Positions 31,008 to 49,966 of a stretch of DNA of 64,000 nucleotides are shown in pieces. Every line of letters starts with the position of its first letter. Position 1 is the stretch's first letter. A program made the position numbers and the translations under genes. Under the pieces are notes generated by a model that had not been told where the DNA came from, did not search any database, and saw nothing but the letters and a program-made list of their open reading frames with translations. The stretch lies in the IMG/VR virus record IMGVR_UViG_3300042564_002819, positions 248,001-312,000 of that record; one strand, written 5' to 3'.

Positions 31008-31104
31008 TAAAACGCCCTCACGTTTTGCATAGTATTTAGCATAATGCGATTGTTTTTTATTGACAAAATGCTTAAATATACTACTATATTACAAAGGAGA
31101 CTGC

Positions 31105-32238
31105 ATGAACAATTTTATAGAAGATTTTATTAAAAAAAATACATTTCACAGACCGACTTTAGTGTTAGATATAAATGAAGTGGAAAAAAACTTCTATAAT
31201 CTTAAACGTGGGATGCCCGATGCTCACATACACTATGCTGTTAAAAGCAATCCGCATCCTGAAATACTAAAATGCTTAGTGCAACAAGGTTGCAAGTTTG
31301 ATGCAGCATCGATGGGAGAAATAGATGCTTGTTTAGAAGCAGGTGCAAAGCCCGAACATATCAGTTTTGGCAATACTGTAAAGCGTTGGCAAGACATCAA
31401 ATATGCACACTCTATAGGTATTGACCTTTTTGCAGCAGATGCAAGTGAAGAACTTGAAAAGATTGCAAATTACGCACCTAACTCTCGCGTGTTTATTCGT
31501 GTATTGATTGGGCAAACTGAAGCAGAATGGCCGTTATCACGAAAGTTTGGTTGCGATCCCCAAATGGTTCTTGAGCTAATGGGATATGCTACAGACCTAG
31601 GTCTTAAGCCAGTTGGTATTAGTTGGCACATTGGTTCACAAACAAAACATCCTGAAATGTGGTTCGACACACTAGAAATGATGGCTAACCTTTGGGATGA
31701 AGCCTGCGGTTTTGGATACGATTTATCGTTGGTAAACATCGGCGGCGGATTTCCTGCATACTACGGTGTTGATATAACTCCGCCAGAAGAATACGGTAGA
31801 AAATTAATGGATCGTGTTCGTAAGCAATTTCCAGGTGCAGACTACATTATGGTCGAACCGGGTCGCGGATTAGTAGGCAGTGCTGGTGCTATTGCTGCTG
31901 AAGTGTTATTGGTTAGCAAGAAGTCATCCTACGAAACAGTGCGTTGGGTTTATTTAAACATAGGAAGATTTAGTGGATTGGCTGAAACCGAAGGCGAAGC
32001 TATTAAATATCAATTTTCTATACCAGGTAAAGAAAACTCTACTACAGGACCATGTATTCTTGCAGGTCCTACTTGCGATAGTGCAGATGTACTATATGAA
32101 AAGAACAAGGTTCATTTGCCAGTTGACCTTTGCAGTGGCGATCGATTTATTATACGAAACTGCGGGGCTTACACCAGCACCTACAGCACTATTGCGTTTA
32201 ACGGGTTTCCGCCGTTAGCTGTTGTAGTTTGCAAATGA
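31105..32238 (+). CDS. Ornithine/lysine decarboxylase (fold III PLP)
   Basis: AAGGAG SD; HYAVKSN, FDAAS, KFG, HIGSQ, NIGGGF, EPGR, GPTCDS, GAYT. Confidence 0.93.
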   Translation: MNNFIEDFIKKNTFHRPTLVLDINEVEKNFYNLKRGMPDAHIHYAVKSNPHPEILKCLVQQGCKFDAASMGEIDACLEAGAKPEHISFGNTVKRWQDIKYAHSIGIDLFAADASEELEKIANYAPNSRVFIRVLIGQTEAEWPLSRKFGCDPQMVLELMGYATDLGLKPVGISWHIGSQTKHPEMWFDTLEMMANLWDEACGFGYDLSLVNIGGGFPAYYGVDITPPEEYGRKLMDRVRKQFPGADYIMVEPGRGLVGSAGAIAAEVLLVSKKSSYETVRWVYLNIGRFSGLAETEGEAIKYQFSIPGKENSTTGPCILAGPTCDSADVLYEKNKVHLPVDLCSGDRFIIRNCGAYTSTYSTIAFNGFPPLAVVVCK

Positions 32239-35668: not shown

Positions 35669-35938
35669 ATGATTACTTTTGTTTGCGAAATTAATCCAAC
35701 ATATGCCAAGCAGAATGGACTTAATAGATACTATCTTGCAAAGGCTAAAAATGCAAATTGGCAAAAAGAAACAAATCTTCCTCGTTCACTACTGTATGGC
35801 TCTGACCGTGTGTGGAGAATTTACGAAAACGGAACAGTTGATTTTGTAAAAAATAGATTTACAGGTATTATGACTCCTGTCGATCAAAGAGAACTTACTG
35901 TTGCTCTCTTGAGTGCAGTATGCTATAACAGTGTATGA
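35669..35938 (+). CDS. Hypothetical protein
   Basis: GAGGA SD. Confidence 0.65.
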   Translation: MITFVCEINPTYAKQNGLNRYYLAKAKNANWQKETNLPRSLLYGSDRVWRIYENGTVDFVKNRFTGIMTPVDQRELTVALLSAVCYNSV

Positions 35939-36543
35939 TCAAAGTACAAGGCAAACTCCCTCGCAGTGTTTACGTCGGATGTTCCGGCGGCTCGGATTCT
36001 ATGGCTGTGGTCGATTTCTTGTCTCGTAGACATGATGTTGAAGTTATTTTCTTCCATCATGGCTCCGAACACGACACTGTTGCACAAGATCTTGTTTATA
36101 ATTACTGTCATAAAAAGAACATCGAATGTATTCTCGGCGGCATGAACAAAGACGATACAATCAAGCCAGGAATGAGCAAAGAAGACTTTTGGAGATGGCG
36201 TCGCTATCGATTCTTTGAGCAATTCGCTAGGCCTGAAACTCCTGTTATTACTTGCCATCATCTAGATGACTGTGCTGAAACTTGGATTTGGAGTAGCTTG
36301 AACGGAAGTCCTTGTATTATTCCTTATCGTAGAAACAATGTGATTAGACCGTTTAGACTTAACAGAAAAAAAGACTTGGAGCTCTGGGCACAACTTAATG
36401 GCGTGCCCTACATCGACGATCCTACTAACACCGATACTACTTTTACTCGAAATTATATTAGACACGAGCTAATGCCACATGCATTACGAGTTAATCCTGG
36501 ACTGCACAAGGTTATTAAAAAGAAAGTTTTAGATGATGTTTAG
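35935..36543 (+). CDS. tilS: tRNA(Ile)-lysidine synthase-like PP-loop ATPase (N-terminal domain only)
   Basis: SGGSDS, RY.FF, TCHHLDD.AET, IRP, DPTN...FTRNYIRH. Confidence 0.85.
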   Translation: MIKVQGKLPRSVYVGCSGGSDSMAVVDFLSRRHDVEVIFFHHGSEHDTVAQDLVYNYCHKKNIECILGGMNKDDTIKPGMSKEDFWRWRRYRFFEQFARPETPVITCHHLDDCAETWIWSSLNGSPCIIPYRRNNVIRPFRLNRKKDLELWAQLNGVPYIDDPTNTDTTFTRNYIRHELMPHALRVNPGLHKVIKKKVLDDV

Positions 36544-37981: not shown

Positions 37982-38187
37982 CCGAAGACGAAATACTTAA
38001 AAAAGCTGAAGAAATTAAAGCAGCTAGAGAAAAAGATAATAGAACTAAAAGTTTTAAAAATGGAACAAAGTTTTATGTTAGATGGGAGTGCAGATTTCAA
38101 GAATACGGTTGCTCTTCTGATCAAGTTGTAGTAAATTATAGTGATATTGAAGAACTTGTTCTTAGAAAATTAAAAGAACAAAATTAA
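37978..38187 (+). CDS. Hypothetical protein
   Basis: ATGA overlap. Confidence 0.65.
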   Translation: MTEDEILKKAEEIKAAREKDNRTKSFKNGTKFYVRWECRFQEYGCSSDQVVVNYSDIEELVLRKLKEQN

Positions 38188-38207
38188 ATTTCACATAGAG
38201 AAGAAAA

Positions 38208-38942
38208 ATGAAAATCAAGATCGGCCCGTATAAGAATTGGTTTGGCCCTTATCAGTTGGCTAAAATGATCATGTTTTGGGTTCCTGACGAAAAAGACGAG
38301 TACGGGTTTTCCCATACCGCTGATCGTGTTCATAAGTTTGGTGAATGGCTTGCTCATGGTAGTATCCGCCCTGAGCCTGCTGTAGACGAAGTATATGACT
38401 TTGGCGACGAACGTCCTGACACTTGGATCTACCGACTGCTACTGTGGATTGATCGTAAGAAAAAGCGTAAGATCAAAGTTCATATCGATCGCTGGGATAC
38501 CTGGGGCATGAGTGAGACTTTAGGCTACATTGTTCGTCCTATGCTTAAACAACTGAATGAAAATAAGCACGGTGCACCTTATGTTGACGACGAAGACGTT
38601 CCTGAGCATCTGCGTAGTACTGCGGCCCCTGAACTTTCGCAAGATAAAAAAGATACTGGTCACACCGATGACAATCATTTCAAGCGGTGGGATTGGGTCA
38701 TGGACGAAATGATCTTTGCGTTTGAAAGTCTTGATGGCGGTGCTAATGCGGATTGGGAAGATCAGTTTACCACTGGAAAATATGATTATCGTCTTAAAAA
38801 ACAAGACAACGGTACTAGTCTAATGGTCCACGGTCCTAATCACACTGCTGAAACAGATTGGGAAGGTCGCAAAGCATATGCAGAACGTGTAGCAAATGGT
38901 TTCCGGCTGTTTGGTAAGTATTACCAATCGCTTTGGGACTAA
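38208..38942 (+). CDS. Conserved-looking phage hypothetical protein
   Basis: DTW.M..TL, HGAP.VD..DVP..LR, RWDWVMDEMIFAF, GFRLFGKYYQSLWD. Confidence 0.8.
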   Translation: MKIKIGPYKNWFGPYQLAKMIMFWVPDEKDEYGFSHTADRVHKFGEWLAHGSIRPEPAVDEVYDFGDERPDTWIYRLLLWIDRKKKRKIKVHIDRWDTWGMSETLGYIVRPMLKQLNENKHGAPYVDDEDVPEHLRSTAAPELSQDKKDTGHTDDNHFKRWDWVMDEMIFAFESLDGGANADWEDQFTTGKYDYRLKKQDNGTSLMVHGPNHTAETDWEGRKAYAERVANGFRLFGKYYQSLWD

Positions 38943-38974
38943 AATACACATATAAAAACTTATAGGATTAAAAG

Positions 38975-39676
38975 ATGCAAAACATCGCAGTTAGCTGGGA
39001 TATAATGTTTAATGAAGATACATCGAAAAATAAGAAAGAAGAAACAAAACTTATTACGTTTCATCACGATCCGTTAGCCTTTACTATAAAAATGGACAGT
39101 GACGGGATGAGTTTAGGAGAGATTCACACTGCACTTTTGCTTGCTAATACCACCGAAGTTGAACAGTGTTTTATCGATGAAGCAAGTAAAATACGTAGCT
39201 TTTTCAACCACTCGATCCTTCTAAGACGTCTTAAAAATGAATTTATTAGTTCATTTATGGAAATTGTTGAAGCACTTAACAACAATGTATACGTTGTAGA
39301 TGAATCACACCTAAAAGCATTGGTAAAATTACCCGACTTTTTTAAAGAGTCAACCGAAACTAACATGCTGTTTGCAGAACACGTATCTTTAAGTATTAAC
39401 CAACCATCTGGCGATTTGTCTGATACATGGAATTTTGTTAAGAAAATAAAAAGATCAAGCAAACACGAAAATCAATATCGTTATTATTTTACCAATGACA
39501 AAAAGCAGTTGCTTAGTTTTTTTGTAAATGTTTCGGACAGATCTTTTCCTGTATGGAATTATATTGCAAGCAGCGGGCCTGTTGGTATAAAAGGATATGC
39601 CTATCCTAATAAACAACCAGGGCACGACTTTATTTTTTACAAGATGAGTAACTATGAATTTTATCCCGTCCGTTGA
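38975..39676 (+). CDS. Hypothetical protein
   Basis: AGGA SD; 233 aa. Confidence 0.7.
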   Translation: MQNIAVSWDIMFNEDTSKNKKEETKLITFHHDPLAFTIKMDSDGMSLGEIHTALLLANTTEVEQCFIDEASKIRSFFNHSILLRRLKNEFISSFMEIVEALNNNVYVVDESHLKALVKLPDFFKESTETNMLFAEHVSLSINQPSGDLSDTWNFVKKIKRSSKHENQYRYYFTNDKKQLLSFFVNVSDRSFPVWNYIASSGPVGIKGYAYPNKQPGHDFIFYKMSNYEFYPVR

Positions 39677-39896
39677 ACAACTTATAAGTTTAGCAAAAGA
39701 AGCAGAAATAACAGATCCGTTGAACTGGGACTTGATCAAGGTTGACAAAGAAACAGTTTATAGTATTATGGCTTCAAATGTGCTAGAACAGTTTGCATCT
39801 TTAAAAGATGAAGAAAAATTAGTTATAGCAATGGGAACTGTAACCAAGCTTTTGGTTGAAAATTTTTACTTACATATGAAAGAAAAACTAAAATGA
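39654..39896 (+). CDS. Hypothetical protein
   Basis: Operon packing. Confidence 0.65.
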   Translation: MNFIPSVEQLISLAKEAEITDPLNWDLIKVDKETVYSIMASNVLEQFASLKDEEKLVIAMGTVTKLLVENFYLHMKEKLK

Positions 39897-40300
39897 AAGT
39901 AGGATCTAGCCTTAGCCGGTGTGTGCGAGACATTTATGAAGGCACAGTTGACATTTATGATGTGCTAGTGATTGTTGCCCGTACAGATTTCGATCCCGAA
40001 GATGATCGTCATTGGAAATCGATCTGGAAAGGTTACGCTGGAGGCAACAGCACGGGCAGTCTGTATAGCCAGCCAGAATGGAGTGTTATTCCTGCAGAAG
40101 ACGAATCTAAGGTTAGAGACATCTGTGTTCAACTTAAGAAGCTAGGCAAGTTGCATCAGCCTCGACAGTACGGTGCTCATCCTACAAGATTGAATCACTA
40201 TTGGTATGATGTTATACTTACAGATGACGTTGTAAATACAAATCCCGCAGCTAAGAAAGCATGGGATAATTATAAGACGATTGCTGGCCTTTCTAAATAA
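39893..40300 (+). CDS. Hypothetical protein
   Basis: SLSRCVRDI...GKLHQPR motif. Confidence 0.75.
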   Translation: MKVGSSLSRCVRDIYEGTVDIYDVLVIVARTDFDPEDDRHWKSIWKGYAGGNSTGSLYSQPEWSVIPAEDESKVRDICVQLKKLGKLHQPRQYGAHPTRLNHYWYDVILTDDVVNTNPAAKKAWDNYKTIAGLSK

Positions 40301-40328
40301 TTTTTTCAAAAAAGATAAATAAAACTAG

Positions 40329-40357
40329 TTGACAGATAAATAAAGTTGTAGTAAGTT
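40329..40357 (+). promoter_or_regulatory. Sigma70-type promoter of the tRNA operon leader
   Basis: TTGACA-N17-TAAGTT. Confidence 0.65.
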
Positions 40358-40398
40358 ACTACTATAAGTTTAAAACAACATAAGAAAGACACATTGTA

Positions 40399-40491
40399 AT
40401 GAAACTCGCATATGAACATAAGTTTATGATTAGAAGCATTGAAAAATGCCGCGAGTATCGCTATGGCGTCTCGGAGGGTTCAGCTGTATGA
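40399..40491 (+). CDS. Putative attenuator leader peptide MKLAYEHKFMIRSIEKCREYRYGVSEGSAV
   Basis: 30-codon ORF between promoter and terminator; contains antiterminator strand GGAGGGTT 40473-40480; codons match downstream tRNAs. Confidence 0.7.
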   Translation: MKLAYEHKFMIRSIEKCREYRYGVSEGSAV

Positions 40492-40517
40492 TGTGATTAA
40501 CACACATATAGATTTAC

Positions 40518-40550
40518 AAACCCTCCAGTAGCAATACTAGGAGGGTTTTT
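40518..40550 (+). terminator. Attenuator terminator upstream of the tRNA array
   Basis: AAACCCTCC-AGTA-GCAA-TACT-A-GGAGGGTTTTT. Confidence 0.85.
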
Positions 40551-40562
40551 CATTATGTGCAT

Positions 40563-40660
40563 ATAGGAAACGAGGTCCTACTCAAAGCACTTTAAAAAAC
40601 AGAGAAACGGGCGGGCTAGTGGATGAAATGACCGGAGATAACGGCAGAGTAAAATACTAG
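40563..40660 (+). ncRNA. Candidate structured RNA at the start of the tRNA operon
   Basis: TAGGA/TCCTA, CTAGT/ACTAG and CCG/CGG helices; no credible ORF. Confidence 0.35.
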
Positions 40661-40663
40661 CAG

Positions 40664-40743
40664 GTAATAGTAAAGCACACTCGTTCTGCCGGGCTGCGAA
40701 CCCGGAATTGGACTGCATAGCGGAGAGTGTGTTTCACTATTAC
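40664..40743 (+). ncRNA. Long hairpin element with ACACT/AGTGT basal stem
   Basis: GTAATAGT-AAAGCACACTC / GAGTGTGTTT-C-ACTATTAC enclosing CCGGG-CTGCGAA-CCCGG. Confidence 0.45.
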
Positions 40744-40751
40744 AAATAATT

Positions 40752-40838
40752 GGTCGGTGGCCCGGATGGTAAGGGGATGGACTGCAACTCCATAGCACTG
40801 CACGACAGTAATCAGTTCGATTCTGATACCGACCTCCA
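40752..40838 (+). tRNA. tRNA-Cys(GCA) with long variable arm
   Basis: GGTCGGT/ACCGACC, U73, encoded CCA; ATGGA-CTGCAAC-TCCAT. Confidence 0.88.
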
Positions 40839-40843
40839 CAATT

Positions 40844-40920
40844 GGTGCCGTAACTCAGTTGGTCAGAGTGCATCGCTCATAACGATGAAGTCGGTGGTTC
40901 AAATCCACCCGGCACCACCA
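40844..40920 (+). tRNA. tRNA(CAT), elongator Met (Ile2 not excluded)
   Basis: GGTGCCG/CGGCACC; CATCG-CTCATAA-CGATG; CCA. Confidence 0.9.
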
Positions 40921-40925
40921 AAATT

Positions 40926-41002
40926 GGGACATTGGACTTCTTGGCGAAGGTCGCCGCCCTTTCAAGGCGGAGAAACGGGTTCGAAACCCGTATGTCCTAC
41001 CA
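40926..41002 (+). tRNA. tRNA-Glu(TTC)
   Basis: CCGCC-CTTTCAA-GGCGG; TTCGAAA T-loop; CCA. Confidence 0.9.
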
Positions 41003-41043
41003 AAATAGATCAAGCCTAGTCGATCTCGAAAATCACTAGGCCC

Positions 41044-41109
41044 GCTCCTGAGGATCAAGCCATCGGAAGGTTCGAGACTTCCTTTGCAGGGTCGTCACCT
41101 GCCAGGAGT
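41044..41109 (+). ncRNA. Candidate T-loop-containing junction RNA
   Basis: GCTCCTG/CAGGAGT closing GGAAG-GTTCGAGA-CTTCC and GCAGG-GTCGTCA-CCTGC. Confidence 0.4.
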
Positions 41110-41118
41110 AACATACAT

Positions 41119-41203
41119 GGGAGAGACGCCTCAAGGTGAGGCAGTGGATTGTAAATCCATCGCGGCAACGCACGGACGGGTTCGATTCCCTCCTCTCCCA
41201 CCA
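41119..41203 (+). tRNA. tRNA-Tyr(GTA)
   Basis: GGGAGAG/CTCTCCC; GTGGA-TTGTAAA-TCCAT; long variable arm; CCA. Confidence 0.9.
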
Positions 41204-41209
41204 AAATTA

Positions 41210-41285
41210 GGGTCTCTGGTATAGCTGGTGCGTACGGCTGCCTGAAGAGCAGTAGGACACGGTTCGATTCCGTGGGGACCCGCCA
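41210..41285 (+). tRNA. tRNA-Phe(GAA)
   Basis: GGGTCTC/GGGACCC; GCTGC-CTGAAGA-GCAGT; CCA. Confidence 0.88.
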
Positions 41286-41320
41286 AGAATTATACTACCA
41301 TAAACACGAAAGAAAATAAA

Positions 41321-41467
41321 ATGAAACTTGATCCGGAAGAAAGAATCTTCTTGACTGAAGAAGAATTGAAGCGTATACATGATGCTTGTGCTAATCCACC
41401 GGAACCAACAGACTATGTAAGACGCTATATTAACGCATATAGGAGAAAAAATGAAACGAAAACGTAA
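41321..41467 (+). CDS. 48-aa protein resembling the C-terminal part of DUF1778/TacA antitoxins
   Basis: Not in the ORF track; ERIFLTEEELKRIHDACANPPEPTDYVRR. Confidence 0.55.
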   Translation: MKLDPEERIFLTEEELKRIHDACANPPEPTDYVRRYINAYRRKNETKT

Positions 41468-41494
41468 CGCAGAAGATTATGACAAACGCAACAT

Positions 41495-41570
41495 GGACCG
41501 GTAGCTGAGGTGGTTTTAGCACCCGACTTTTAATCGGAGTACGTGGGTTCGAGTCCCACCCGGTCCACCA
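41495..41570 (+). tRNA. tRNA-Lys(TTT)
   Basis: GGACCGG/CCGGTCC; CCGA-CTTTTAA-TCGG; CCA. Confidence 0.9.
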
Positions 41571-41684
41571 TAGTTTTGATGATACACTGACGCCGCGTGG
41601 TTACGGCTATACAACTAGGCTTATCGCAACCTAATAACCATAGAGGGTTGAGTCGAGGTTGAGCAGTGTATCTTTTAAACTATG
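41569..41684 (+). ncRNA. Long hairpin element with ACACT/AGTGT basal stem
   Basis: CATAGTTT...GATACACTG / CAGTGTATC...AAACTATG between tRNA-Lys and tRNA-Ile. Confidence 0.45.
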
Positions 41685-41689
41685 AATAT

Positions 41690-41765
41690 TGTTCCATAGC
41701 ACAACTGGTTAGTGCAGGCGACTGATAATCGTCAGATCTGAGTTCGAGTCTCGGTGGAACAACCA
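41690..41765 (+). tRNA. tRNA-Ile(GAT)
   Basis: TGTTCCA/TGGAACA; GGCGA-CTGATAA-TCGTC; CCA. Confidence 0.9.
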
Positions 41766-41786
41766 AAATTAGTAGGAAGACAGCCA

Positions 41787-41966
41787 GTGGAAGAACAGGA
41801 ATATTACGCACCGTGGGAATGGCAGCCGATCGAATTCATGCCTAACGGATGTAATGATGTTGTTGTAAGAGACCGTGAAGGCAACACTCGAGAATTGTGT
41901 TCATGCGATTACTGGTGGTTGTCAGCAGAAGATAAAAAGATTTACACATCTTTTAGATTTGTGTAA
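41787..41966 (+). CDS. Hypothetical protein
   Basis: AGGA SD then GTG; WQPIE motif; the track start lies inside tRNA-Ile. Confidence 0.55.
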   Translation: MEEQEYYAPWEWQPIEFMPNGCNDVVVRDREGNTRELCSCDYWWLSAEDKKIYTSFRFV

Positions 41967-41978
41967 TTTTAACATAAT

Positions 41979-42053
41979 GCCGTGCTTGGTGTAAGGGTAG
42001 CATACCGCACTGTGACTGCGTTGGAATAGGTTCAAATCCTATACACGGTACCA
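41979..42053 (+). tRNA. tRNA-His(GTG), alphaproteobacterial type
   Basis: CGCA-CTGTGAC-TGCG; G1-U72, A73, T rather than G at -1. Confidence 0.85.
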
Positions 42054-42065
42054 ATACAAATTTAA

Positions 42066-42659
42066 TTATTGTACTTTTTTACTTAATACTCTGTATATGT
42101 CGTTATAGTTATTTTTATATTTCGACTCATTGACAATTTCGTAGTTATATAATTGGTTTAATACCTTTAAACCATGTATTCCATCTTTAGTATCTAATTG
42201 ATTGCATGTACCTATTACATGATCTGACAATGACAAACTATAATCAAATAGTTCTTCCCAAGTATTATTATATGGATACAGTTCTATAATTACCATTTGA
42301 TGTTTTTTAGTGTAATTAAAAAAATCACATTTCATAGCTGTGATGTTTGGGTAGTTGTGCATTGTGTTAAACAGTGCTAGGGTGTTTTGTTTTTTTAAAA
42401 ACTTATCCGCACAAGTCATCTTATGAAGATCACGCAACTCTTCGTATGTTTCAATATAGTGAAACGTATCTATTGCAGTAACATGTGTCTTTGGAAATGA
42501 ACGACAAATTGCCGCAGCAACTCTGCCGCCAAATGTGCCAGCACACAAAACGTCACGTATATCATTGTTTGATATATGATCGCAAATATTAACTATTTCC
42601 TCGTATCCAGTCCAATTTGGAAAGTCCATTAGTATATTATATTTGCTTTTATATGACAT
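42066..42659 (-). CDS. SAM-dependent methyltransferase-like protein
   Basis: DVLCAGTFGGR...VTAIDTF Rossmann-like motifs; TATAAATA and AGGA upstream on the minus strand. Confidence 0.55.
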   Translation of the reverse strand: MSYKSKYNILMDFPNWTGYEEIVNICDHISNNDIRDVLCAGTFGGRVAAAICRSFPKTHVTAIDTFHYIETYEELRDLHKMTCADKFLKKQNTLALFNTMHNYPNITAMKCDFFNYTKKHQMVIIELYPYNNTWEELFDYSLSLSDHVIGTCNQLDTKDGIHGLKVLNQLYNYEIVNESKYKNNYNDIYRVLSKKVQ

Positions 42660-42715
42660 GTGATATTCCTTGTATAACTAAAACGTATTTATAAAACTTA
42701 AAATAAGAGAGATAA

Positions 42716-43147
42716 ATGATGAGCAAATATGACACATATAACAGATTAACCGAACCTGTAAAATCATTTGATGAACTACGCGGCCGTGCGTTAACTCGTG
42801 TTGAAAAAATCGGAAACGACGAATTGCGTTTCTACTTAACAGATGAACATTATGTTCGTATGCATCACAATCAAGATTGTTGCGAATCAGTAACAATCGA
42901 GGATATTGTTGGTGATTTAGACGATTTAGTCGGAACTCCGTTGCTGGTTGTCGAAGAACGTGTTTCTCGTAACGATGGCGGTACAGATGAACTGTATTGT
43001 GATTCATACACTTGGACATACTACAGTTTTCGCACTATCAAAGGTAGTGTAGATATTCGTTGGTATGGAAGTAGCAATGGATACTATTCAGAAGGTGTTG
43101 ACATTGACATTGTAACACCCGATGCAGAAAATCAAGTAGAAATCTAA
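42716..43147 (+). CDS. Conserved-looking phage hypothetical protein
   Basis: HNQDCCESV, WTYY, WYGSSNGYYSE. Confidence 0.75.
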   Translation: MMSKYDTYNRLTEPVKSFDELRGRALTRVEKIGNDELRFYLTDEHYVRMHHNQDCCESVTIEDIVGDLDDLVGTPLLVVEERVSRNDGGTDELYCDSYTWTYYSFRTIKGSVDIRWYGSSNGYYSEGVDIDIVTPDAENQVEI

Positions 43148-43216
43148 GGCCAAAGGCTTAGATCACATCAAGTTAAACTGTATTATTTCTATATACTGTC
43201 ATTTTATAAATATTTT

Positions 43217-43729
43217 ATGAGGGTATTACTAATAATAACGCTATTATTATCTCTTTCTGCTTGTGCTGATTTTAAGAAAATTCTTCGACCCGAACCTACA
43301 CCAGAACCGATAAAAACAGCAATAGAAAAAGTAGGTTGGAACGAGCATCAAGACCGCAGAGAAATAAGAGAATTTACTGGTGTAGATCCAGTAAGTACAC
43401 AATGGTGTGCTGCGTTTGTAAACGCAGTTCTTGAAGAAAATGGGTTACCTGGATCGGAGTTCTATAACGAAAATCCACTGTTAGCAAGAAGTTTTCTGTC
43501 CTGGGGTGTAGAGGTAGAAGAGCCCGAATACGGCGATATTGTAGTATTTGCTCGAGGCAATGAAGCTTGGAAGGGTCATGTTGGGTTTTATGTAACTTCG
43601 ACATATTTAGAAGGTCAAAAACACTACTTAGTTCTTGGCGGAAATCAAAACAACAGTGTCACATACAAAGCATATCCTACTCGTAGACTGCTTTCTGTAA
43701 GACGACTTACAACAGAAGATACTGAATAA
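43217..43729 (+). CDS. CHAP/NlpC-like cell-wall peptidase lipoprotein (TIGR02594-like)
   Basis: Lipobox LSAC; WCAAFVN, ARSFLSWG, GDIVVF, GHVGFY, LGGNQ. Confidence 0.85.
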   Translation: MRVLLIITLLLSLSACADFKKILRPEPTPEPIKTAIEKVGWNEHQDRREIREFTGVDPVSTQWCAAFVNAVLEENGLPGSEFYNENPLLARSFLSWGVEVEEPEYGDIVVFARGNEAWKGHVGFYVTSTYLEGQKHYLVLGGNQNNSVTYKAYPTRRLLSVRRLTTEDTE

Positions 43730-43742
43730 AATTTAGTTTAAT

Positions 43743-43819
43743 GCTCTCGTAGCTCAATGGATTAGAGCGTCGGTCTACGAAACCGAAGGTTAGAGGTTCG
43801 AGTCCTCTCGAGAGTGCCA
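43743..43819 (+). tRNA. tRNA-Arg(ACG)
   Basis: GCTCTCG/CGAGAGT; TCGGT-CTACGAA-ACCGA; CCA. Confidence 0.93.
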
Positions 43820-43828
43820 AAATACTAG

Positions 43829-43857
43829 TTGACACTGGCATAGACAAGTGTTATTGT
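43829..43857 (+). promoter_or_regulatory. Sigma70-type promoter
   Basis: TTGACA-N17-TATTGT with extended -10. Confidence 0.7.
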
Positions 43858-43882
43858 GAGTGCAACAAGAAAGGAAATACAC

Positions 43883-44179
43883 ATGAATAAAATTCTAATT
43901 TCTGCACTTTTTGCCTTTGTTTCTACTGCTGCTACTGCAAAAACAGTTTATTACCCCGAAGCTGCATGTAACGAAATTCTCAGCAGCGAATACAGCACTG
44001 GTGGGGGTGATTCCAGCTGGGAGATGTACGAAATTCTTTGCCGTGACGCTAATGGAAAATACACTACCTTTGTTACCAGCTGGATGAGTGTTGCAGGGTT
44101 CTTTGGTATGGGTCGAGTTGCATACGAAGAAACGATTGACCTTGTACCCTACAACGGTACTACATTGAAGGCTGAATAA
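43883..44179 (+). CDS. Secreted hypothetical protein
   Basis: AAGGA SD; signal peptide. Confidence 0.7.
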   Translation: MNKILISALFAFVSTAATAKTVYYPEAACNEILSSEYSTGGGDSSWEMYEILCRDANGKYTTFVTSWMSVAGFFGMGRVAYEETIDLVPYNGTTLKAE

Positions 44180-44180
44180 A

Positions 44181-44624
44181 ATGAAAATCGAATATCGTAA
44201 AGGCAACATGTTTGAAACTGACATCCTGCATATTGCACATGGCTGCAATGCACAAGGTGTTATGGGATCTGGCGTTGCTAAGATTGTAAAAGAAGATTAC
44301 TTTGATGCATATCGTTTCTACGCAGAACAGTACGACGAGCATGGACTTAAATTAGGAGATGTGCAGTTTGTTCCTGCAAACGGCAAAGTAATCATCAATG
44401 CTGTTACGCAGAATCTGTACGGCAAAGACGGTCGTCGTTTTGTTAATTACGAAGCAGTTGCAGAGTGCATGAGAACTATTAATAGTGTACTTAAGCAAAG
44501 TGGCGAAACTCATGTTGCTATGCCGCAAATTGGTGCCGGCCTTGGTGGCGGCGATTGGCGTGTGATTGAAGCAATCATTGAAAGCGAAATGACAGACATT
44601 CAACCTGTGGTGTATGTACTGTGA
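44181..44624 (+). CDS. Macro domain protein (ADP-ribose processing)
   Basis: KGNMF, HGCNAQGVMGSGVA, MPQIGAGLGGGDW. Confidence 0.9.
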   Translation: MKIEYRKGNMFETDILHIAHGCNAQGVMGSGVAKIVKEDYFDAYRFYAEQYDEHGLKLGDVQFVPANGKVIINAVTQNLYGKDGRRFVNYEAVAECMRTINSVLKQSGETHVAMPQIGAGLGGGDWRVIEAIIESEMTDIQPVVYVL

Positions 44625-44767
44625 CAACACCCTTAGCAGATCAGAAGATATTCTCACTCAATGATCTCATTGAAATGGGTCTTATTACACGTAAACAGTT
44701 AGAAGATCACATCCGATACATGGAAGCAAAACAGTTAGTAAAAGAACTGTTTCCAGGAATGTTTTAA
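44621..44767 (+). CDS. Small hypothetical protein (48 aa)
   Basis: GTGA overlap with the macro gene; not in track. Confidence 0.5.
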   Translation: MTTPLADQKIFSLNDLIEMGLITRKQLEDHIRYMEAKQLVKELFPGMF

Positions 44768-44795
44768 AAATAAAGAATAGGTAGCCGCGACTACC

Positions 44796-44927
44796 TTGGC
44801 TAGGAGACTATTTGCATTGTGCATCGTGGGGCCTTTGTGTAGTAGACTGTTTCGTCTAACGGAGAGGACGCCGGTGGAGATCCGGAGATACAGGTTCGAG
44901 TCCTGTAGCAGTTTTGCTCCTAGCCAA
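44796..44927 (+). ncRNA. tRNA-like RNA embedded in an 11-bp outer stem
   Basis: TTGGCTAGGAG/CTCCTAGCCAA encloses a cloverleaf at 44845-44913 with a non-canonical anticodon loop and no CCA. Confidence 0.55.
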
Positions 44928-44936
44928 AATAATTTA

Positions 44937-45012
44937 GCCTTCGTAGCTCAACTGGAAGAGCAAGGGATTTCTACTCCCTAGGTTGTGGGTTCGACTCCTG
45001 CCGGGGGCACCA
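44937..45012 (+). tRNA. tRNA-Arg(TCT)
   Basis: GCCTTCG/CGGGGGC; AGGGA-TTTCTAC-TCCCT; CCA. Confidence 0.92.
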
Positions 45013-45021
45013 AAAAAGCTG

Positions 45022-45050
45022 TTGACACAGACTTGGCACTATGCTACAAC
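45022..45050 (+). promoter_or_regulatory. Sigma70-type promoter
   Basis: TTGACA-N17-TACAAC with extended -10. Confidence 0.65.
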
Positions 45051-45067
45051 AAGTTATTGAATAACAC

Positions 45068-45472
45068 ATGAGGAACACTGAGATGAAGACTGCTTACAAG
45101 AACCGTGACGGCGAATGGGTTGTGGCCGAGCAGATCAAGATGAGCCGGTATGACCTTGAAGGTTCGGTAGATTCGATTAAGGCTGCACTGGACGAGGTTC
45201 GCGACCGTGCTACCGCAATGGGTATGGTGGGTGAAGGCACTGTTGACATCAGCCTGAACCGCGGCTTCTACTCGGACGACTACGAAATAGAAGTGGAATA
45301 CTCCTTCACTCGGTATGAATACCCTGTGGAGATGGAGCGGCGTTTGGAGCGTGAGGCCAAGGATAAGGCTGCGGCTGCTGCCAAGCGTAAGGAAGCCGCC
45401 CAGAAGCGGAAACTCAAGAACGATCCTGAGTATGTGGAGTTTGAACGGCTCCGGGCCAAGTTTGGTGGTTGA
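45068..45472 (+). CDS. Hypothetical protein (GC-richer)
   Basis: ORF after promoter; charged C-terminal helix. Confidence 0.7.
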   Translation: MRNTEMKTAYKNRDGEWVVAEQIKMSRYDLEGSVDSIKAALDEVRDRATAMGMVGEGTVDISLNRGFYSDDYEIEVEYSFTRYEYPVEMERRLEREAKDKAAAAAKRKEAAQKRKLKNDPEYVEFERLRAKFGG

Positions 45473-45497
45473 CAACACTCTCCTGCTGTGCTATAAC
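45469..45497 (+). promoter_or_regulatory. Sigma70-type promoter
   Basis: TTGACA-N17-TATAAC with extended -10. Confidence 0.75.
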
Positions 45498-45528
45498 AAC
45501 AGCATAGGGCAACACGAGGAGAAATCAA

Positions 45529-45876
45529 ATGCCTTGTAGAGTCAACGACGAAGACTGGAAACCGCGTAAAGAAACCCGCCACGGGATGGATATCGAATCT
45601 TTCGAAGCTACACTTTGCGGCGTCTTCACTGCTGCAGAGGAAGGCGCCTTTGCGCCTACGGTTGTTGGCGGAGTTGATGGCTTGCTGGATGTGATCGACT
45701 GGAAAGAAGCCGGAGTGAAACGCAAGACCGTTGAAGCATGGTGGAAGCGGCATAAGGCAGAAGATGCTGCCCGCCTTGCTCGCGAATCTGCTGAACGGCG
45801 TAAGGCTGAACTCAAGCGGATTGCGATCGGCAAACTCACTGCAGAAGAACTGGAAGTGTTGGGGATCAAACTCTAA
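45529..45876 (+). CDS. Hypothetical protein
   Basis: GAGGAG SD; MPC start, WW..H...D..R, KLT.EE..VLG. Confidence 0.75.
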   Translation: MPCRVNDEDWKPRKETRHGMDIESFEATLCGVFTAAEEGAFAPTVVGGVDGLLDVIDWKEAGVKRKTVEAWWKRHKAEDAARLARESAERRKAELKRIAIGKLTAEELEVLGIKL

Positions 45877-45886
45877 CACTTTCTGG

Positions 45887-45915
45887 TTGACATCCTACCT
45901 ACACCGTGCTATGTA
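45887..45915 (+). promoter_or_regulatory. Sigma70-type promoter
   Basis: TTGACA-N17-TATGTA with extended -10. Confidence 0.65.
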
Positions 45916-45947
45916 TATTGTATAGGGCAACAAGAGGACAACCACAG

Positions 45948-46199
45948 ATGCCGAATCCTGCTACTGCTCCCCGTGACGAATTGAACGAGTTTACTCGCTC
46001 TGTATGGCTGCTTGGTAACAGCAACTGGGGTAATCACGGTGTACGTCTTCGGAACGGGTTGATTGTCAAACCGATCTACAAGCCCGCAGAAGACGAGACC
46101 AGTGAAGATGCATTCTTCACCGAAGACTATGAATACTGCTGGAACCTGGACGGCACTTCGGTAACCCGCAGGGACTTTGATATGATGGAGATCGTGTGA
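45948..46199 (+). CDS. Hypothetical protein
   Basis: GAGGA SD then ATG 45948. Confidence 0.7.
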   Translation: MPNPATAPRDELNEFTRSVWLLGNSNWGNHGVRLRNGLIVKPIYKPAEDETSEDAFFTEDYEYCWNLDGTSVTRRDFDMMEIV

Positions 46200-46200
46200 T

Positions 46201-46608
46201 ATGATCAGAGACCTATTCGTTCCTGTGGCTGAACTGCTGTTCTGGTTCACCGGCGGAGAACTACTGCTGAATACCTGGTGGTTCTTTGTGTGGGTTGTTG
46301 GTGGTGCGTTCCTTGTAACCTTGCCGCTGTGGTTAGGTATGCGTCTGGCCAGACGTGGTAGTAACCTCAAGTGGATACCTGGCACACTCTTCCTAGTCGG
46401 CTTCTTCCCTGCCTTACTGCTGATCACCAGCCCAGGCATCATCCAAGCCGACTTGATGGAAGAATGCCTACCCGTCCAGACCGTAACAGTGGATACCGCA
46501 CAGGTCAAAGGTATTGAAGTTCGAGTTCGCCAGTGTCGCTTCAAGGCCAACTACTATGACAAAAATTATGGTGAATGGCAAGCCTGGGCGGTTGACCGGC
46601 ACCAATAA
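46201..46608 (+). CDS. Membrane protein
   Basis: GGAG SD; two to three hydrophobic helices. Confidence 0.7.
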   Translation: MIRDLFVPVAELLFWFTGGELLLNTWWFFVWVVGGAFLVTLPLWLGMRLARRGSNLKWIPGTLFLVGFFPALLLITSPGIIQADLMEECLPVQTVTVDTAQVKGIEVRVRQCRFKANYYDKNYGEWQAWAVDRHQ

Positions 46609-46624
46609 CTGTATTATAAGCTGC

Positions 46625-46880
46625 ATAAGGAGAGACCGGCAACTTGTGTAGTGCATGTAGTGACGACTTGCGGATAACAGGTGGGATCGTGACATGTTGT
46701 AAATCTTTATGTAAGGGGTCGACACTTTATATAGAGAGAACGCTGCATACGCTGTGGGACCTCGGCGTATCATTAAGGTGATCAAATCACGCAGGGGTAA
46801 AAGCCCTAATGAGGGGTCCTAGGAATTAAAGGAAATACTGTGAGATATAGAAAGTTTTACGACGACTTCTAGGCTATAAC
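46625..46880 (+). ncRNA. Candidate structured ncRNA or long 5' leader
   Basis: Gap of about 285 nt after TTGACC-N17-TATAAG with many nested helices. Confidence 0.45.
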
Positions 46881-46893
46881 CTAGGAGAATCAA

Positions 46894-47100
46894 ATGGCAA
46901 AATCACCTGTTTACGGCAGAGGCCGTAATCGTAAACATAGAGGGCACCGCGGCCCTGTTCACGCTGCGGCTGCTAACATCAATATGCGTGGCAAAAAAAG
47001 CAAACCTGACCACTGCTGGTGCTGTATTTGTATTGACATGCGTGAAGATATCTTGTATCGTATACACAAGAAGGAGATGAGAGATGAAAGAGACACGTAA
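46894..47100 (+). CDS. Small basic Cys-cluster protein
   Basis: AGGAG SD; R/K-rich N-terminus; HCWCCIC. Confidence 0.65.
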   Translation: MAKSPVYGRGRNRKHRGHRGPVHAAAANINMRGKKSKPDHCWCCICIDMREDILYRIHKKEMRDERDT

Positions 47101-47608
47101 GTATCTAGTATTTTTAGACATTGACGGCGTTTTTACTAGCTCTCGTGTTCACTTTGCACACGCTGCTGCTTATGAAATGTGGCACAGATTTGATCCTGTA
47201 GCAGTTGATTTTATGAACAAGATTCATGACAGATATCCTGTGGAGTTTGTGATCATGAGTACTTGGAAGGACAACCTTCGCAGTGACGATAACAACGTAA
47301 AACACTGGGTTCATGCTGCGTTTGGCAACAGTGGCTTTCGTGGGCAACTTGCTACACCTTGGAAAACAGATCCTGACAACGTCATCTGGCAGCGTAAAGG
47401 TGCAAATGATCGTGCCTACGAAGTAAAAGAATATTTAGAACTATACGCAACAGATATAAAAGATTACATTTTGTTTGATGATAATCGCTATCAATTCAAA
47501 GAAGTGCTAGGCGTTAATCGCCTAGTTCATACAGATCACGAAAATGGTCTGTTATACAAGCATATGCTAAATGCTCATAGTTTGATGGGACAGTGGCACG
47601 AGCGGTGA
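47084..47608 (+). CDS. HAD phosphatase of the Swiss-army-knife RNA-repair type
   Basis: VFLDIDGV, STW, YILFDD, GL. Confidence 0.8.
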   Translation: MKETRKYLVFLDIDGVFTSSRVHFAHAAAYEMWHRFDPVAVDFMNKIHDRYPVEFVIMSTWKDNLRSDDNNVKHWVHAAFGNSGFRGQLATPWKTDPDNVIWQRKGANDRAYEVKEYLELYATDIKDYILFDDNRYQFKEVLGVNRLVHTDHENGLLYKHMLNAHSLMGQWHER

Positions 47609-47640
47609 CATCGCTCGGAATAATAACAAAGGAAACAGAG

Positions 47641-47850
47641 ATGACTAAAGAACAAGTTTTAAAATCGCTACCCACGTTTAAATTGCTGGCATGGGGAGAA
47701 ACCGCAGAAACCAGCGGCAATGGAAAATATGTGCATTTTGATGCAAAAGAATCTAGTACACGTATCTTTACTATTGAAGCAATTCTTGCAGAACTAGATA
47801 AGCGTGACGACAATCCTAACCGAGATTCTAGAAAAAAGAAGAAAAAATGA
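47641..47850 (+). CDS. Hypothetical protein
   Basis: AAGGA SD then ATG 47641. Confidence 0.6.
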   Translation: MTKEQVLKSLPTFKLLAWGETAETSGNGKYVHFDAKESSTRIFTIEAILAELDKRDDNPNRDSRKKKKK

Positions 47851-47933
47851 TTAAGTTGCATATTGCTAATTTGGTTAATATTTTGTTATCCAAATTGCAA
47901 GAGATATTGTATAATAGATTAATAAATTAAAGT

Positions 47934-48506
47934 ATGTGTAAGTTAGTTTTTGTTTATAGTTCTATGAATTCCGGTAAAAGCCTAGCTGTTCTTACCAAAA
48001 ATTATATGTTAAAAGAAAAAGGTTTTAAGACTGTGCTCATGAAGCCGGCAGTTGATACTAGGACTGCGGCAACTGTGGCTACACGCTTAGGCTTAGAAGA
48101 GCCCTGTGTTGTACTAGGAACAACTGATTTGCCTAGTCATACTATACTAAAATCAGCACACGACAAGCCTGATTTTATTATTGTTGACGAAGCACAGTTT
48201 TTAACAAGCGAACAAGTTTGGGACCTAGCTGGCTTAGTCGACAACTGGGGCATAAACGTGTATTGCTATGGTCTACGACTTAACTGGCAAGGAGAGTTTT
48301 TTACAGGATCGGAAGCACTGATGAAAATTGCTGATGTGCTAGAACCAATCGAAAACTTCTGTCAAATAAATAAAGGAGCACTAGCATTCTTTCATATTAA
48401 AAAAGCAGGTGGCGATAATCCTGTAGAAGTTGGAATGGAAGACATGTATGACACTGCGTCTAGAAAAGCCTGGAAGCAGTGGTATGACACAAAAAGGCCT
48501 CTGTAG
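47934..48506 (+). CDS. tdk: Thymidine kinase
   Basis: YSSMNSGKS, KPAVDTR, VDEAQFL, CYGLR. Confidence 0.93.
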   Translation: MCKLVFVYSSMNSGKSLAVLTKNYMLKEKGFKTVLMKPAVDTRTAATVATRLGLEEPCVVLGTTDLPSHTILKSAHDKPDFIIVDEAQFLTSEQVWDLAGLVDNWGINVYCYGLRLNWQGEFFTGSEALMKIADVLEPIENFCQINKGALAFFHIKKAGGDNPVEVGMEDMYDTASRKAWKQWYDTKRPL

Positions 48507-48572
48507 CTCAATGGATAGAGCAGCAGACTTCGAATCTGTAGGTTGGGCGTTCGAGTCGCTCCAGGGGTACCA
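48497..48572 (+). tRNA. tRNA-Arg(TCG)
   Basis: GCCTCTG/CAGGGGT; GCAGA-CTTCGAA-TCTGT; CCA; overlaps the tdk stop. Confidence 0.9.
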
Positions 48573-48634
48573 AAATAACACTTGATCTCTTACTTTGCAT
48601 AGTGTAAGCTGTAAGTATAGTAAAGGAGAATCAA

Positions 48635-48814
48635 ATGTGGAAACTTTATATTATGGAATCTGAACGCGGTTGGGGTCAACGAGTTGACGAAATACTAAAG
48701 TTCGACACGTATGAAGAGGCCGATAAATACAAAAAAGAATTTAACAGTAAAAACAATCTTCCTGAAGTGCCTGATTGGTACATGTATGCAGATGGACCTG
48801 TTAAAGTAGATTAA
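48635..48814 (+). CDS. Small hypothetical protein (59 aa)
   Basis: AAGGAG SD; MESERGWGQR...VPDWY; not in track. Confidence 0.7.
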   Translation: MWKLYIMESERGWGQRVDEILKFDTYEEADKYKKEFNSKNNLPEVPDWYMYADGPVKVD

Positions 48815-48898
48815 GTCGCTGTGGTGTAATGGTAGCCACGACAGCTTGAGGTGCTGTTGCCGCAAGGCGTGGGAGTTCGAATCTCCCCAGCGACACCA
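48815..48898 (+). tRNA. tRNA-Leu(GAG)
   Basis: GTCGCTG/CAGCGAC; ACAGC-TTGAGGT-GCTGT; long variable arm; CCA. Confidence 0.92.
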
Positions 48899-48914
48899 AT
48901 TTTAAGGAATAAAA

Positions 48915-49565: not shown

Positions 49566-49630
49566 GGTTGATGTTCTGTTGTGTACTTGCTATAATGCAA
49601 GTCACAACAGCACATTGAAAGAATCTTAAA

Positions 49631-49954: not shown

Positions 49955-49966
49955 AGGAAAAACAAA

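Follow-up and report, generated by a model that had tools for sequence, protein, structure and literature searches.

The codons of a short ORF preceding a phage tRNA array mirror the tRNAs that follow across related phages, suggesting an attenuator of tRNA expression

Whether a phage can adjust transcription of its own tRNA genes to the supply of tRNAs is a question raised by a short leader region of a giant uncultured phage. The sequence analyzed, henceforth referred to as the window, is a 64,000-nucleotide stretch of IMG/VR record IMGVR_UViG_3300042564_002819 (positions 248,001 to 312,000 of that record). A first-pass annotation had described a promoter, a 30-codon ORF, an internal copy of a terminator arm and an intrinsic terminator in front of a tRNA array, and all of these features were confirmed on the plus strand. 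The sigma70-type promoter (40329-40357) consists of a TTGACA -35 element (40329-34), a 17-nt spacer and a weak -10 element, TAAGTT (40352-57), which was not called by a consensus scan. However, TTGACA-N16-18-TAxxx(T/C) was found 55-70 nt upstream of nearly all homologous leaders, and an ATAAATA motif is also conserved upstream of them. Two GATAAATAAA motifs (40314-23 and 40335-44) may represent a phage late-type promoter element. The leader ORF (40399-40491) begins 42 nt after the -10 element and contains 30 sense codons followed by TGA. Its Shine-Dalgarno-like sequence, AAGAAAG (40382-40388), is weak and distant. Relatives carry AAGGAAAG at the same place, ending about 12 nt before the ATG, while typical window genes have AGGA/GGAG starting 9-14 nt before the ATG, about 5 nt closer than the leaders' motif.

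The copy of the terminator right arm, GGAGGGTT (40473-40480), lies within the ORF, is Shine-Dalgarno-like and ends 8 nt before the stop codon. The intrinsic terminator (40518-40550) has a 13-nt left arm containing AAACCCTCC (40518-26), a GCAA loop and a right arm with one bulged A containing GGAGGGTTT (40540-48), followed by a tract of five T residues (40546-50). It folds at -18.0 kcal/mol (z = -5.9), and its upper stem differs and stays complementary between variants (AGTAGC.. / AAGC.. / ACC..). The pattern CCTCC-N(3-20)-GGAGG-TTTT occurs once in the window, with 0 expected by chance, and the window's other terminators use unrelated stems.

The proximal tRNA array (40752-42053) encodes Cys(GCA), Met(CAU), Glu(UUC), Tyr(GUA), Phe(GAA), Lys(UUU), Ile(GAU) and His(GUG), with two small ORFs and a structured spacer. 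The first-pass annotation stated that 19 of leader codons 2-22 are read by 12 downstream tRNAs; this count is correct only if a 13th tRNA is included. ARAGORN with default settings found 12 tRNAs and no tRNA-Tyr, but a type-II tRNA-Tyr(GUA) with a CCA end (41119-41203) was recovered at a relaxed threshold and matched weakly in Rfam. The 13 genes have 12 distinct anticodons, read 23 codons and cover 38.0% of codons in the window's long ORFs. Against this base rate, the 19/21 match has a binomial P = 9e-7, or P = 5e-6 when corrected for choosing the best 21-codon sub-window. None of 10,861 real-gene windows (0 of 10,861) reached this value, and 11 of 12 anticodons are represented in the leader. 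However, 1 of 199 other small ATG ORFs in the window, an antisense one, also reached it, so the window alone is suggestive and not decisive. Most tRNAs are represented by only one or two codons, unlike the codon runs of classical attenuators.

The element is conserved. About 25 distinct homologs of the leader plus terminator (class 1) were identified upstream of homologous tRNA arrays in IMG/VR and metagenome contigs, after filtering of a permissive 15-base pattern scan of IMG/VR that returned mostly chance hits. At least three further classes of unrelated peptides with the same layout also precede tRNA arrays in related metagenomic phages, which are designated here by L numbers. DNA similarity to deposited phages matched only the tRNA genes, another leader class gave no match, and a scan of genome contigs for the conserved block downstream of the terminator found nothing; there is therefore no cultured relative and no host assignment. 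The reading frame is open in all 23 class-1 variants, whereas the two other frames are closed in 15/15. Lengths are 29-32 whole codons while the adjacent spacer varies by single nucleotides, and the non-synonymous:synonymous ratio is about neutral, indicating that the ORF is maintained, but not as a protein.

Leader codon content tracks tRNA-array content across relatives, as the first-pass annotation had proposed to test. In two phages with two leaders and two arrays, each leader matches its own array and not the other one by Fisher tests (L006: P = 1.5e-4 by amino acid and 4.7e-5 by codon; L042: P = 7.8e-4 and 4.9e-4). All array identities are represented in the leader in 9 of 11 pairs (each P = 0.006-0.03), and isoacceptor-level synonymous matching was observed 34 times against 24.6 expected (z = 3.0). 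The L154 leader has 3 CAA codons and its array has tRNA-Gln(UUG), while L042 leader B has 4 ACC/ACT codons and its array has tRNA-Thr(GGU). A prospective prediction was half met: the L044 leader has 3 Gln codons and no Cys codon, and its extension L189 (100% identical over the overlap) contains tRNA-Gln(UUG) and no tRNA-Cys, but the predicted tRNA-Asn was not found. The correspondence is imperfect, since GCA, AGC and ACU codons have no tRNA in the array and some arrays hold tRNAs without a codon in the leader (Asp in L180, Pro in L033, Val in L016, Gln(CUG) in L173). Moreover, homologous leaders go with homologous arrays, so the number of independent evolutionary events is small (about five). 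Leaders containing all 20 amino acids were considered as a further signature, but this holds only for the L014 group (P about 1e-3) and not for the other mixed-array classes, and was not used as evidence.

The position of the matched codons within the ORF fits a sensing function. The predicted sensing head (codons 2-21, 40402-40461), whose boundary is inferred from standard ribosome footprint dimensions, is the segment in which a stalled ribosome would leave GGAGGG free. In the window, 18 of 20 head residues are served by the phage tRNAs against 2 of 9 in the tail, and across leaders matched residues make up 140/170 of the head against 39/72 of the last nine codons (P = 1.1e-5). These data bear on the possibility that the ORF is an ordinary small phage gene with its own promoter and terminator, that the array is transcribed independently and that the codon resemblance is a by-product of phage codon usage. 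Phage tRNAs generally match codons that the phage uses frequently, tRNA regions of phages such as T5 are full of small ORFs, and the antisense ORF noted above scores as high as the leader. Nevertheless, general codon usage cannot explain why each of two leaders in one genome matches its own array, or why matched codons are confined to the head, and the peptide evolves about neutrally while the frame and geometry are kept. The small ORFs of T5 are followed directly by tRNAs, with no terminator and no copy of a terminator arm. This explanation is considered very unlikely.

Folding of the transcript before the right arm exists predicted an antiterminator (40473-40526; -32.2 kcal/mol, z = -4.35) in which GGAGGGUU:AACCCUCC closes an inner helix (40484-95 with 40501-11) containing the stop codon (40489-91). 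The same pairing is in the MFE of the full-length leader. Alternative folds were also predicted for L005 leaders 1 and 2, L014, L027 and L042 leader A, and the left arm is predicted to be sequestered by the 3' end of the ORF in 30 of 32 leaders, although composition-preserving shuffles sequester it fairly often (P = 0.0-0.4 per leader). Apart from L042 leader A (44 nt), the copy of the right arm starts 10-19 nt before the stop, and the left arm starts 26-32 nt after it in every leader. The first-pass annotation had also proposed to test whether the antiterminator covaries in relatives, and covariation was not observed within the family. Because the left-arm register shifts in the class-1 alignment, column-based counting was replaced by per-sequence folding and by a comparison of own and cross complementarity, in which ORF tails paired as well with the terminators of other variants as with their own (6.22 against 6.28 bp). 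In the L005 clade the terminator changed (GCCUCC/GGAGGC) and the ORF copy did not follow. One between-class compensatory case was found: L042 leader A has a different terminator stem (GCCCC/GGGGC), and its ORF tail has a matching GGGC in place of GGAGG.

The invariant GGAGG core could therefore have another role, such as an internal Shine-Dalgarno that holds or pauses the ribosome at the stop codon, or that drives re-initiation on an overlapping ATG-ATG-stop mini-ORF. Translation of the leader would then affect processing, stability or Rho access of the precursor rather than intrinsic termination. Consistent with this, the 3' end of the core lies about 7 nt before the last sense codon, an initiation-like spacing, and about 13 of 23 class-1 variants have ATGATG followed by a stop overlapping the leader's stop codon. 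However, the mini-ORF is absent in many variants (L031, L152, L174, L161, L044, L042), L042 leader A lacks GGAGG altogether and has instead a segment complementary to its own left arm, and leader 2 of L005 has 10-11 bp of complementarity reaching into the upper stem. A three-way pairing constraint by itself also predicts an invariant core. This alternative is considered unlikely, though less so than the other alternatives discussed here.

Taken on sequence evidence alone, the element is likely a ribosome-mediated (leader-peptide) transcription attenuator placed in front of a phage tRNA array. In the proposed mechanism, host RNA polymerase starts at the TTGACA promoter and transcribes the leader, whose first ~20 codons are almost all read by tRNAs encoded downstream. 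If all those tRNAs are available, the ribosome, inferred to translate the leader, would run to the stop codon and cover the GGAGGG that lies 11-16 nt upstream of it, leaving the CCCUCC left arm free to pair with the GGAGGG right arm so that transcription terminates at the T-tract. If any of the tRNAs is scarce, the ribosome would stall in the head, GGAGGG would pair with CCCUCC to form the antiterminator, and the polymerase would read through into the tRNA genes, whose products relieve the stall in a demand-driven feedback. Depletion could come from a mismatch between phage codon demand and the host tRNA pool, or from host anticodon nucleases. The direction of the switch is inferred, and the reverse polarity, in which complete translation promotes read-through and stalling promotes termination, would receive some support from the inner helix of the antiterminator, which contains the stop codon and would be remodeled by a passing ribosome. 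This reading appears very doubtful: judging from footprint dimensions, a ribosome at the stop codon covers GGAGGG but cannot reach the left arm 26-32 nt downstream, which favors the terminator, and the antiterminator is the predicted default without ribosomes. In addition, positive feedback on tRNA supply would not explain why the leader lists exactly the array's tRNAs.

Expression of what follows the terminator appears to require read-through in class 1, as no sigma70-like promoter was found between the T-tract and the downstream RNA genes in the window (40551-40751) or in the class-1 relatives, although phage-specific promoters cannot be excluded. In L035, tRNA-Cys starts 3 nt after the T-tract, and in classes 3 and 4 a tRNA(CAU) starts 3-5 nt after it. 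In classes 2-4, however, conserved sigma70 promoters lie after the terminator, so there the attenuator can only add to constitutive expression. The first sequence reached by read-through is a conserved non-coding block (40551-40751) with no Rfam family and one helix with 3 compensated pairs. A second ORF over this block (L005 5270-5359) was rejected because the window has only a 3-codon ORF there and one helix covaries, and a T4-type late promoter inside the block (TATAAACA) was rejected because the key positions vary between variants. The caveat in the first-pass annotation that the distal tRNAs may lie on separate transcripts holds. Five distal tRNAs (43743-48898) are interleaved with protein genes and are probably on other transcripts: Arg(ACG) at 43743, Leu(GAG) at 44844, Arg(UCU) at 44937, Arg(UCG) at 48497 and Leu(GAG) at 48815. 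A 197-aa ORF on the minus strand (42066-42659) and promoter-like sites at 43104 and 43829 lie in between.

The first-pass annotation further proposed host anticodon nucleases as the trigger, which is plausible only because of a neighboring RNA-repair gene set. The window encodes an Rnl1-type ligase, a PNKP-type phosphatase, kinases and other RNA-repair domains next to the tRNA array. T4 Rnl1 and Pnkp repair PrrC-cut tRNA-Lys, and T5 tRNAs rescue infection from tRNA-targeting defenses (PMC11555353), but neither system is described with a sensor that makes expression of replacement tRNAs conditional on tRNA shortage. It remains possible, though tentative, that a family of such leaders acts as a counter-defense switch in which cleavage or depletion of any one listed tRNA stalls the ribosome and switches on replacement tRNAs, the terminating ribosome's own anti-Shine-Dalgarno captures the GGAGG strand to set the off state, and the adjacent repair genes complete a sense-replace-repair module for tRNA damage.

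To our knowledge, and in the full-text literature searches made, tRNA genes have not been reported to be controlled by leader-peptide attenuation in cells or in phages. If the element works as proposed, phages meter tRNA supply against decoding demand with a sensor that reads about ten tRNA species at once, which offers a testable mechanism for when and why phage tRNAs are expressed. The peptide-unrelated leader classes that each mirror their own array provide a natural experiment for dissecting the design rules, and a compact part (about 220 nt) reporting shortage of any of a programmable set of tRNAs could be useful as a biosensor. The trp, his, leu, thr and pheA attenuators of enterobacteria share a promoter-proximal short ORF, an intrinsic terminator, regulatory codons upstream of the antiterminator 5' strand, and a mutually exclusive pairing, here only predicted, whose 5' strand is covered by a ribosome at the leader's stop codon. 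Here the genes proposed to be regulated are tRNA genes and not enzymes, the leader lists one or two codons for each of 9-13 tRNA species instead of a run of one codon, the switch strands are a Shine-Dalgarno/anti-Shine-Dalgarno mimic, and no 1:2 anti-antiterminator is evident, so the untranslated default is predicted to be read-through. Multivalent attenuation of ilvGMEDA/ilvBN senses several aminoacyl-tRNAs with one leader (Leu, Val and Ile in ilvGMEDA), as is proposed here, but with several codons for each of two or three amino acids and with control of their biosynthesis. As is proposed for the phage leader, the pheM leader of pheST controls a component of the translation apparatus by reading a cognate charged tRNA, but it senses only tRNA-Phe, controls a synthetase and is not phage-encoded.

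Like the proposed switch, a T-box riboswitch makes a terminator/antiterminator decision from the state of a specific tRNA, but binds uncharged tRNA directly through a specifier codon and the T-box loop, without translation. No T-box (RF00230) or curated leader family was matched in Rfam, with only tRNA-type hits at E <= 1 in 38000-50000 of the window and the same outcome for L005, L014 and L042. T5 and Ruegeria phage V10 were examined for the same module and neither has it. Within the ORF, a GC-rich hairpin (40446-40469; AUGCC-GCGA / UCGC-GGCGU) is predicted over the most conserved nucleotides and is a candidate RNA-polymerase pause hairpin, its role being inferred. Control of transcription elongation appears to be a theme on these arrays, since related phages carry tandem promoters and a boxA-like CGCTCTTTGACAATTT in front of tRNA arrays. 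In contrast to the proposed switch, rrn-type boxA gives processive, signal-independent antitermination; the boxA-like sequence lies downstream of the leader's terminator and is only weakly recognizable in the window (40592-40608).

The window derives from a roughly 330-kb uncultured jumbo phage (IMG/VR contig 3300042564_002819), which carries rIIA, NrdA and T4-type baseplate/lysozyme genes and whose closest cultured rIIA is only 31-38% identical. All features listed in the first-pass annotation, which described a promoter, a 30-codon ORF and an intrinsic terminator in front of a tRNA array, were confirmed in the sequence. TTGACA is present at 40329-34 with only a weak TAAGTT -10 at the 17-nt spacing, and this promoter was not called by the consensus scan. 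The 30-codon ORF spans 40399-40491 and contains GGAGGGTT at 40473-80. The terminator comprises the left arm AAACCCTCC (40518-26), the right arm GGAGGGTTT (40540-48) and a run of five T, and folds at -18.0 kcal/mol.

Annotation with ARAGORN at default settings identified 12 tRNAs and no tRNA-Tyr, although TAT occurs three times in the leader. A type-II tRNA-Tyr(GUA) with a CCA end was recovered at 41119-41203 (+) using a relaxed threshold, and was detected by Rfam only as a weak tRNA-Sec-like hit. With this gene included, the first-pass count of 19 of 21 leader codons read by the phage tRNAs is exact. The 13 genes (12 anticodons) read 23 codons, which make up 38.0% of codons in the window's long ORFs. 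After correction for the choice of sub-window, 19 of 21 has P = 5e-6; none of 10,861 real-gene windows reaches this value, and 11 of 12 anticodons are represented. One antisense small ORF among the 199 others in the window scores as high, so the window alone would not settle the matter. Additionally, the identity of one of the tRNAs is doubtful, as the 72-nt gene called Leu(GAG) at 44844-44915 (+) has no long variable arm, unlike the 84-nt Leu(GAG) at 48815-48898.

Homologous loci were retrieved by anchoring on the tRNA-Cys gene, which does not depend on the leader, and on a degenerate leader pattern. The tRNA-Cys(GCA) at 40752-40838 (+) is 87 nt long with a long variable arm, which is unusual for tRNA-Cys; its first 25 nt are identical in 29 IMG/VR contigs, and it is the first tRNA of most of these arrays. 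A subsequent profile search recovered about 25 distinct homologs of the leader plus terminator, all of which lie upstream of homologous tRNA arrays. The reading frame is open in all 23 variants of class 1, the class of the window leader, while both other frames are closed in 15 of 15. ORF length changes only by whole codons (29-32), whereas the neighbouring spacer changes by single nucleotides (27-34 nt), and the non-synonymous to synonymous ratio (810:281) is about neutral. This is the signature of a regulatory leader and not of a functional small protein.

A generic search over about 1.5 Mb of fetched loci for a short ORF followed by a terminator that shares a strand with the ORF tail found almost nothing outside tRNA arrays. 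It did identify further classes with unrelated peptides and the same layout. These are a second leader inside the arrays of the loci L005 and L006 (L005 7273-7362), with a relative in locus L015; a first leader in locus L042 (391-516); and two classes in front of mixed arrays, one in loci L027, L021 and L035 and the other in loci L014, L026, L038 and L013.

The comparative test proposed in the first-pass annotation, namely whether leader codon content tracks tRNA array content across related phages, supported its interpretation. Class-1 arrays are drawn from the same nine identities (Cys, Met, Glu, Tyr, Phe, Lys, Ile, His, Arg, sometimes Leu), which are the residues of the conserved leader core. 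Two phages have two leaders and two arrays, and in both of them each leader matches its own array and not the other (L006: Fisher P = 1.5e-4 by amino acid and 4.7e-5 by codon; L042: P = 7.8e-4 and 4.9e-4). All tRNA identities of an array are represented in its leader in 9 of 11 pairs, each with P = 0.006-0.03. Given the amino acids used, the synonymous codons chosen are those read by the array's anticodons more often than expected (34 against 24.6, z = 3.0). Within class 1, the leader of locus L154 gained three CAA codons and its array holds tRNA-Gln(UUG), while L042 leader B gained four ACC/ACT codons and its array holds tRNA-Thr(GGU).

As a prospective test, tRNA-Gln and tRNA-Asn, and no tRNA-Cys, were predicted in the unseen part of the array of locus L044. 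The extending contig L189, which is 100% identical over the 1,260-nt overlap, contains tRNA-Gln(UUG) and no tRNA-Cys, but also no tRNA-Asn. The match between leaders and arrays is not perfect, since GCA, AGC and ACT codons recur without a cognate tRNA in the array and some arrays hold tRNAs that the leader does not list. Homologous leaders also travel with homologous arrays, so only about five independent evolutionary events were counted. Taken with these limits, it is likely that the element is a tRNA-sensing attenuator of the phage tRNA array, although translation of the leader, the effect of stalling on read-through, the antiterminator and the direction of the switch are inferred.

In the transcript that exists before the right arm is made, GGAGGGUU is predicted to pair with AACCCUCC, forming a helix that encloses an inner helix containing the stop codon (-32.2 kcal/mol, z = -4.35). 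The same pairing persists in the minimum-energy fold of the full leader, so the predicted untranslated default is read-through. Leader 2 of L005 has an even longer alternative helix, and L014, L027 and L042 leader A are predicted to switch between the two structures in the same way. In all but one leader of every class, the copy of the right arm starts 10-19 nt before the stop codon; the exception is L042 leader A, where the copy found by the search lies 44 nt before the stop. The left arm starts 26-32 nt after the stop in every leader. Based on standard ribosome footprint dimensions, a ribosome at the stop codon would cover the copy but not the left arm, and only stalls at about codon 21 or earlier would leave the copy free. 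The tRNA-matched residues are concentrated in exactly that head region, at 140 of 170 against 39 of 72 in the last nine codons (P = 1.1e-5). In the window the corresponding figures are 18 of 20 against 2 of 9.

Covariation is the weak point of the proposed switch. ORF tails pair no better with their own terminators than with those of other variants (6.22 against 6.28 bp), and composition-preserving shuffles also sequester the left arm fairly often. Such invariance is predicted by a three-way constraint in which two GGAGG strands compete for one CCUCC strand, and two observations fit that idea. The CCUCC/GGAGG stem is unique to this terminator in the window, and the one class with a different stem (GCCCC/GGGGC) has a matching GGGC in its ORF tail instead of GGAGG. 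Because the strands are a Shine-Dalgarno / anti-Shine-Dalgarno pair, and GGAGGG ends about 7 nt before the last sense codon, it is inferred that the terminating ribosome's own 16S 3' end could hold that strand. A mini-ORF, ATG ATG TGA, at 40488-40496 (+) overlaps the leader's stop codon and lies 9 nt after GGAGGG. ATGATG followed by a stop is present in about 13 of 23 class-1 variants but is absent in the others.

In class 1, the conserved block and the tRNAs follow the T-tract with no sigma70-like promoter in between. In L035, tRNA-Cys starts 3 nt after the T-tract, and in classes 3 and 4 a tRNA(CAU) starts 3-5 nt after it. Genes placed like this can only be reached through the terminator, unless there are phage-specific promoters, which cannot be excluded. 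Against a simple picture, classes 2-4 then have conserved promoters further downstream, which in class 2 are tandem promoters followed by a boxA-like CGCTCTTTGACAATTT, so in those classes the attenuator can only add to constitutive transcription. Tandem sigma70 promoters followed by CGCTCTTTGACAATTT, which is very close to the rrn boxA consensus TGCTCTTTAACAA, lie in front of phage tRNA arrays at L005 7447-7620, at L015(-) and L042 580-1000, and at about 6380-6400 of L191, the cultured roseophage Ruegeria phage vB_RpoS-V10. This arrangement suggests Nus-factor antitermination on phage tRNA operons, and perhaps an alphaproteobacterial host.

The conserved block of about 200 nt between the terminator (or a promoter) and the first tRNA (window 40551-40751; L005 5268-5486; L014 478-711) matches no Rfam family. 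One helix has 3 compensated pairs, and in some loci the 3' part contains T-arm-like GGTTCGAnTCC. It could be a processed leader or a stable RNA like the T4/T5 'species' RNAs. The spacer between tRNA-Lys and tRNA-Ile at 41575-41680 (+) has a long-range stem (GATACACTG ... CAGTGTATC) and may be another structured RNA. In the window, the proximal unit runs from the leader through tRNA-His (42053), while five distal tRNAs are interleaved with protein genes and are probably on other transcripts, as the first-pass annotation had cautioned for four of them.

Mechanistically, the proposed element is of the trp/his type of attenuation and is closest to the multivalent ilv leaders and to pheM-pheST. It falls outside the scope of the classical family because the genes it would regulate are tRNA genes. 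It lists one or two codons for about ten tRNA species, lacks an evident anti-antiterminator, and matches no Rfam leader or T-box model. The small ORFs in the tRNA region of T5 and the cultured Ruegeria phage lack the module. No description of attenuation of tRNA genes was found in the literature searched, from which most of the older T4 and T5 work was absent.

The surrounding 25 kb encodes an RNA-repair gene set next to the tRNA array, comprising a Macro domain, a SAK-type HAD repair domain, a PNKP-type phosphatase, two P-loop (Zeta/AAA_33) kinases, an ADP-ribosylglycohydrolase and a T4 Rnl1-type RNA ligase (44181-44624, 47084-47608, 53801-54244, 54593-55324(-), 58429-59340, 59868-60401 and 60401-61558). 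In T4, Rnl1 and Pnkp repair tRNA cut by the host anticodon nuclease PrrC, and phage tRNAs that rescue infection from tRNA-targeting defences have been described (PMC11555353). This context makes tRNA damage a plausible trigger, but the anticodon-nuclease trigger put forward in the first-pass annotation remains speculative. Two more translation-maintenance genes near the array, at 35935-36543 and 50200-50592 (+), are a PP-loop ATPase (the family of TilS-type tRNA-modifying enzymes) and a weak, partial peptidyl-tRNA hydrolase (Pth2) match. A 1019-aa protein encoded at 55354-58413 (+) combines several KOW (NusG/Spt5-like) motifs with a sigma70 region-1.1 domain, and may be a phage factor that acts on transcription elongation or termination. 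The phage also encodes a CHASE2-sensor adenylate/guanylate cyclase and an ornithine/arginine-type PLP decarboxylase at 27951-29990 and 31060-32238 (+).
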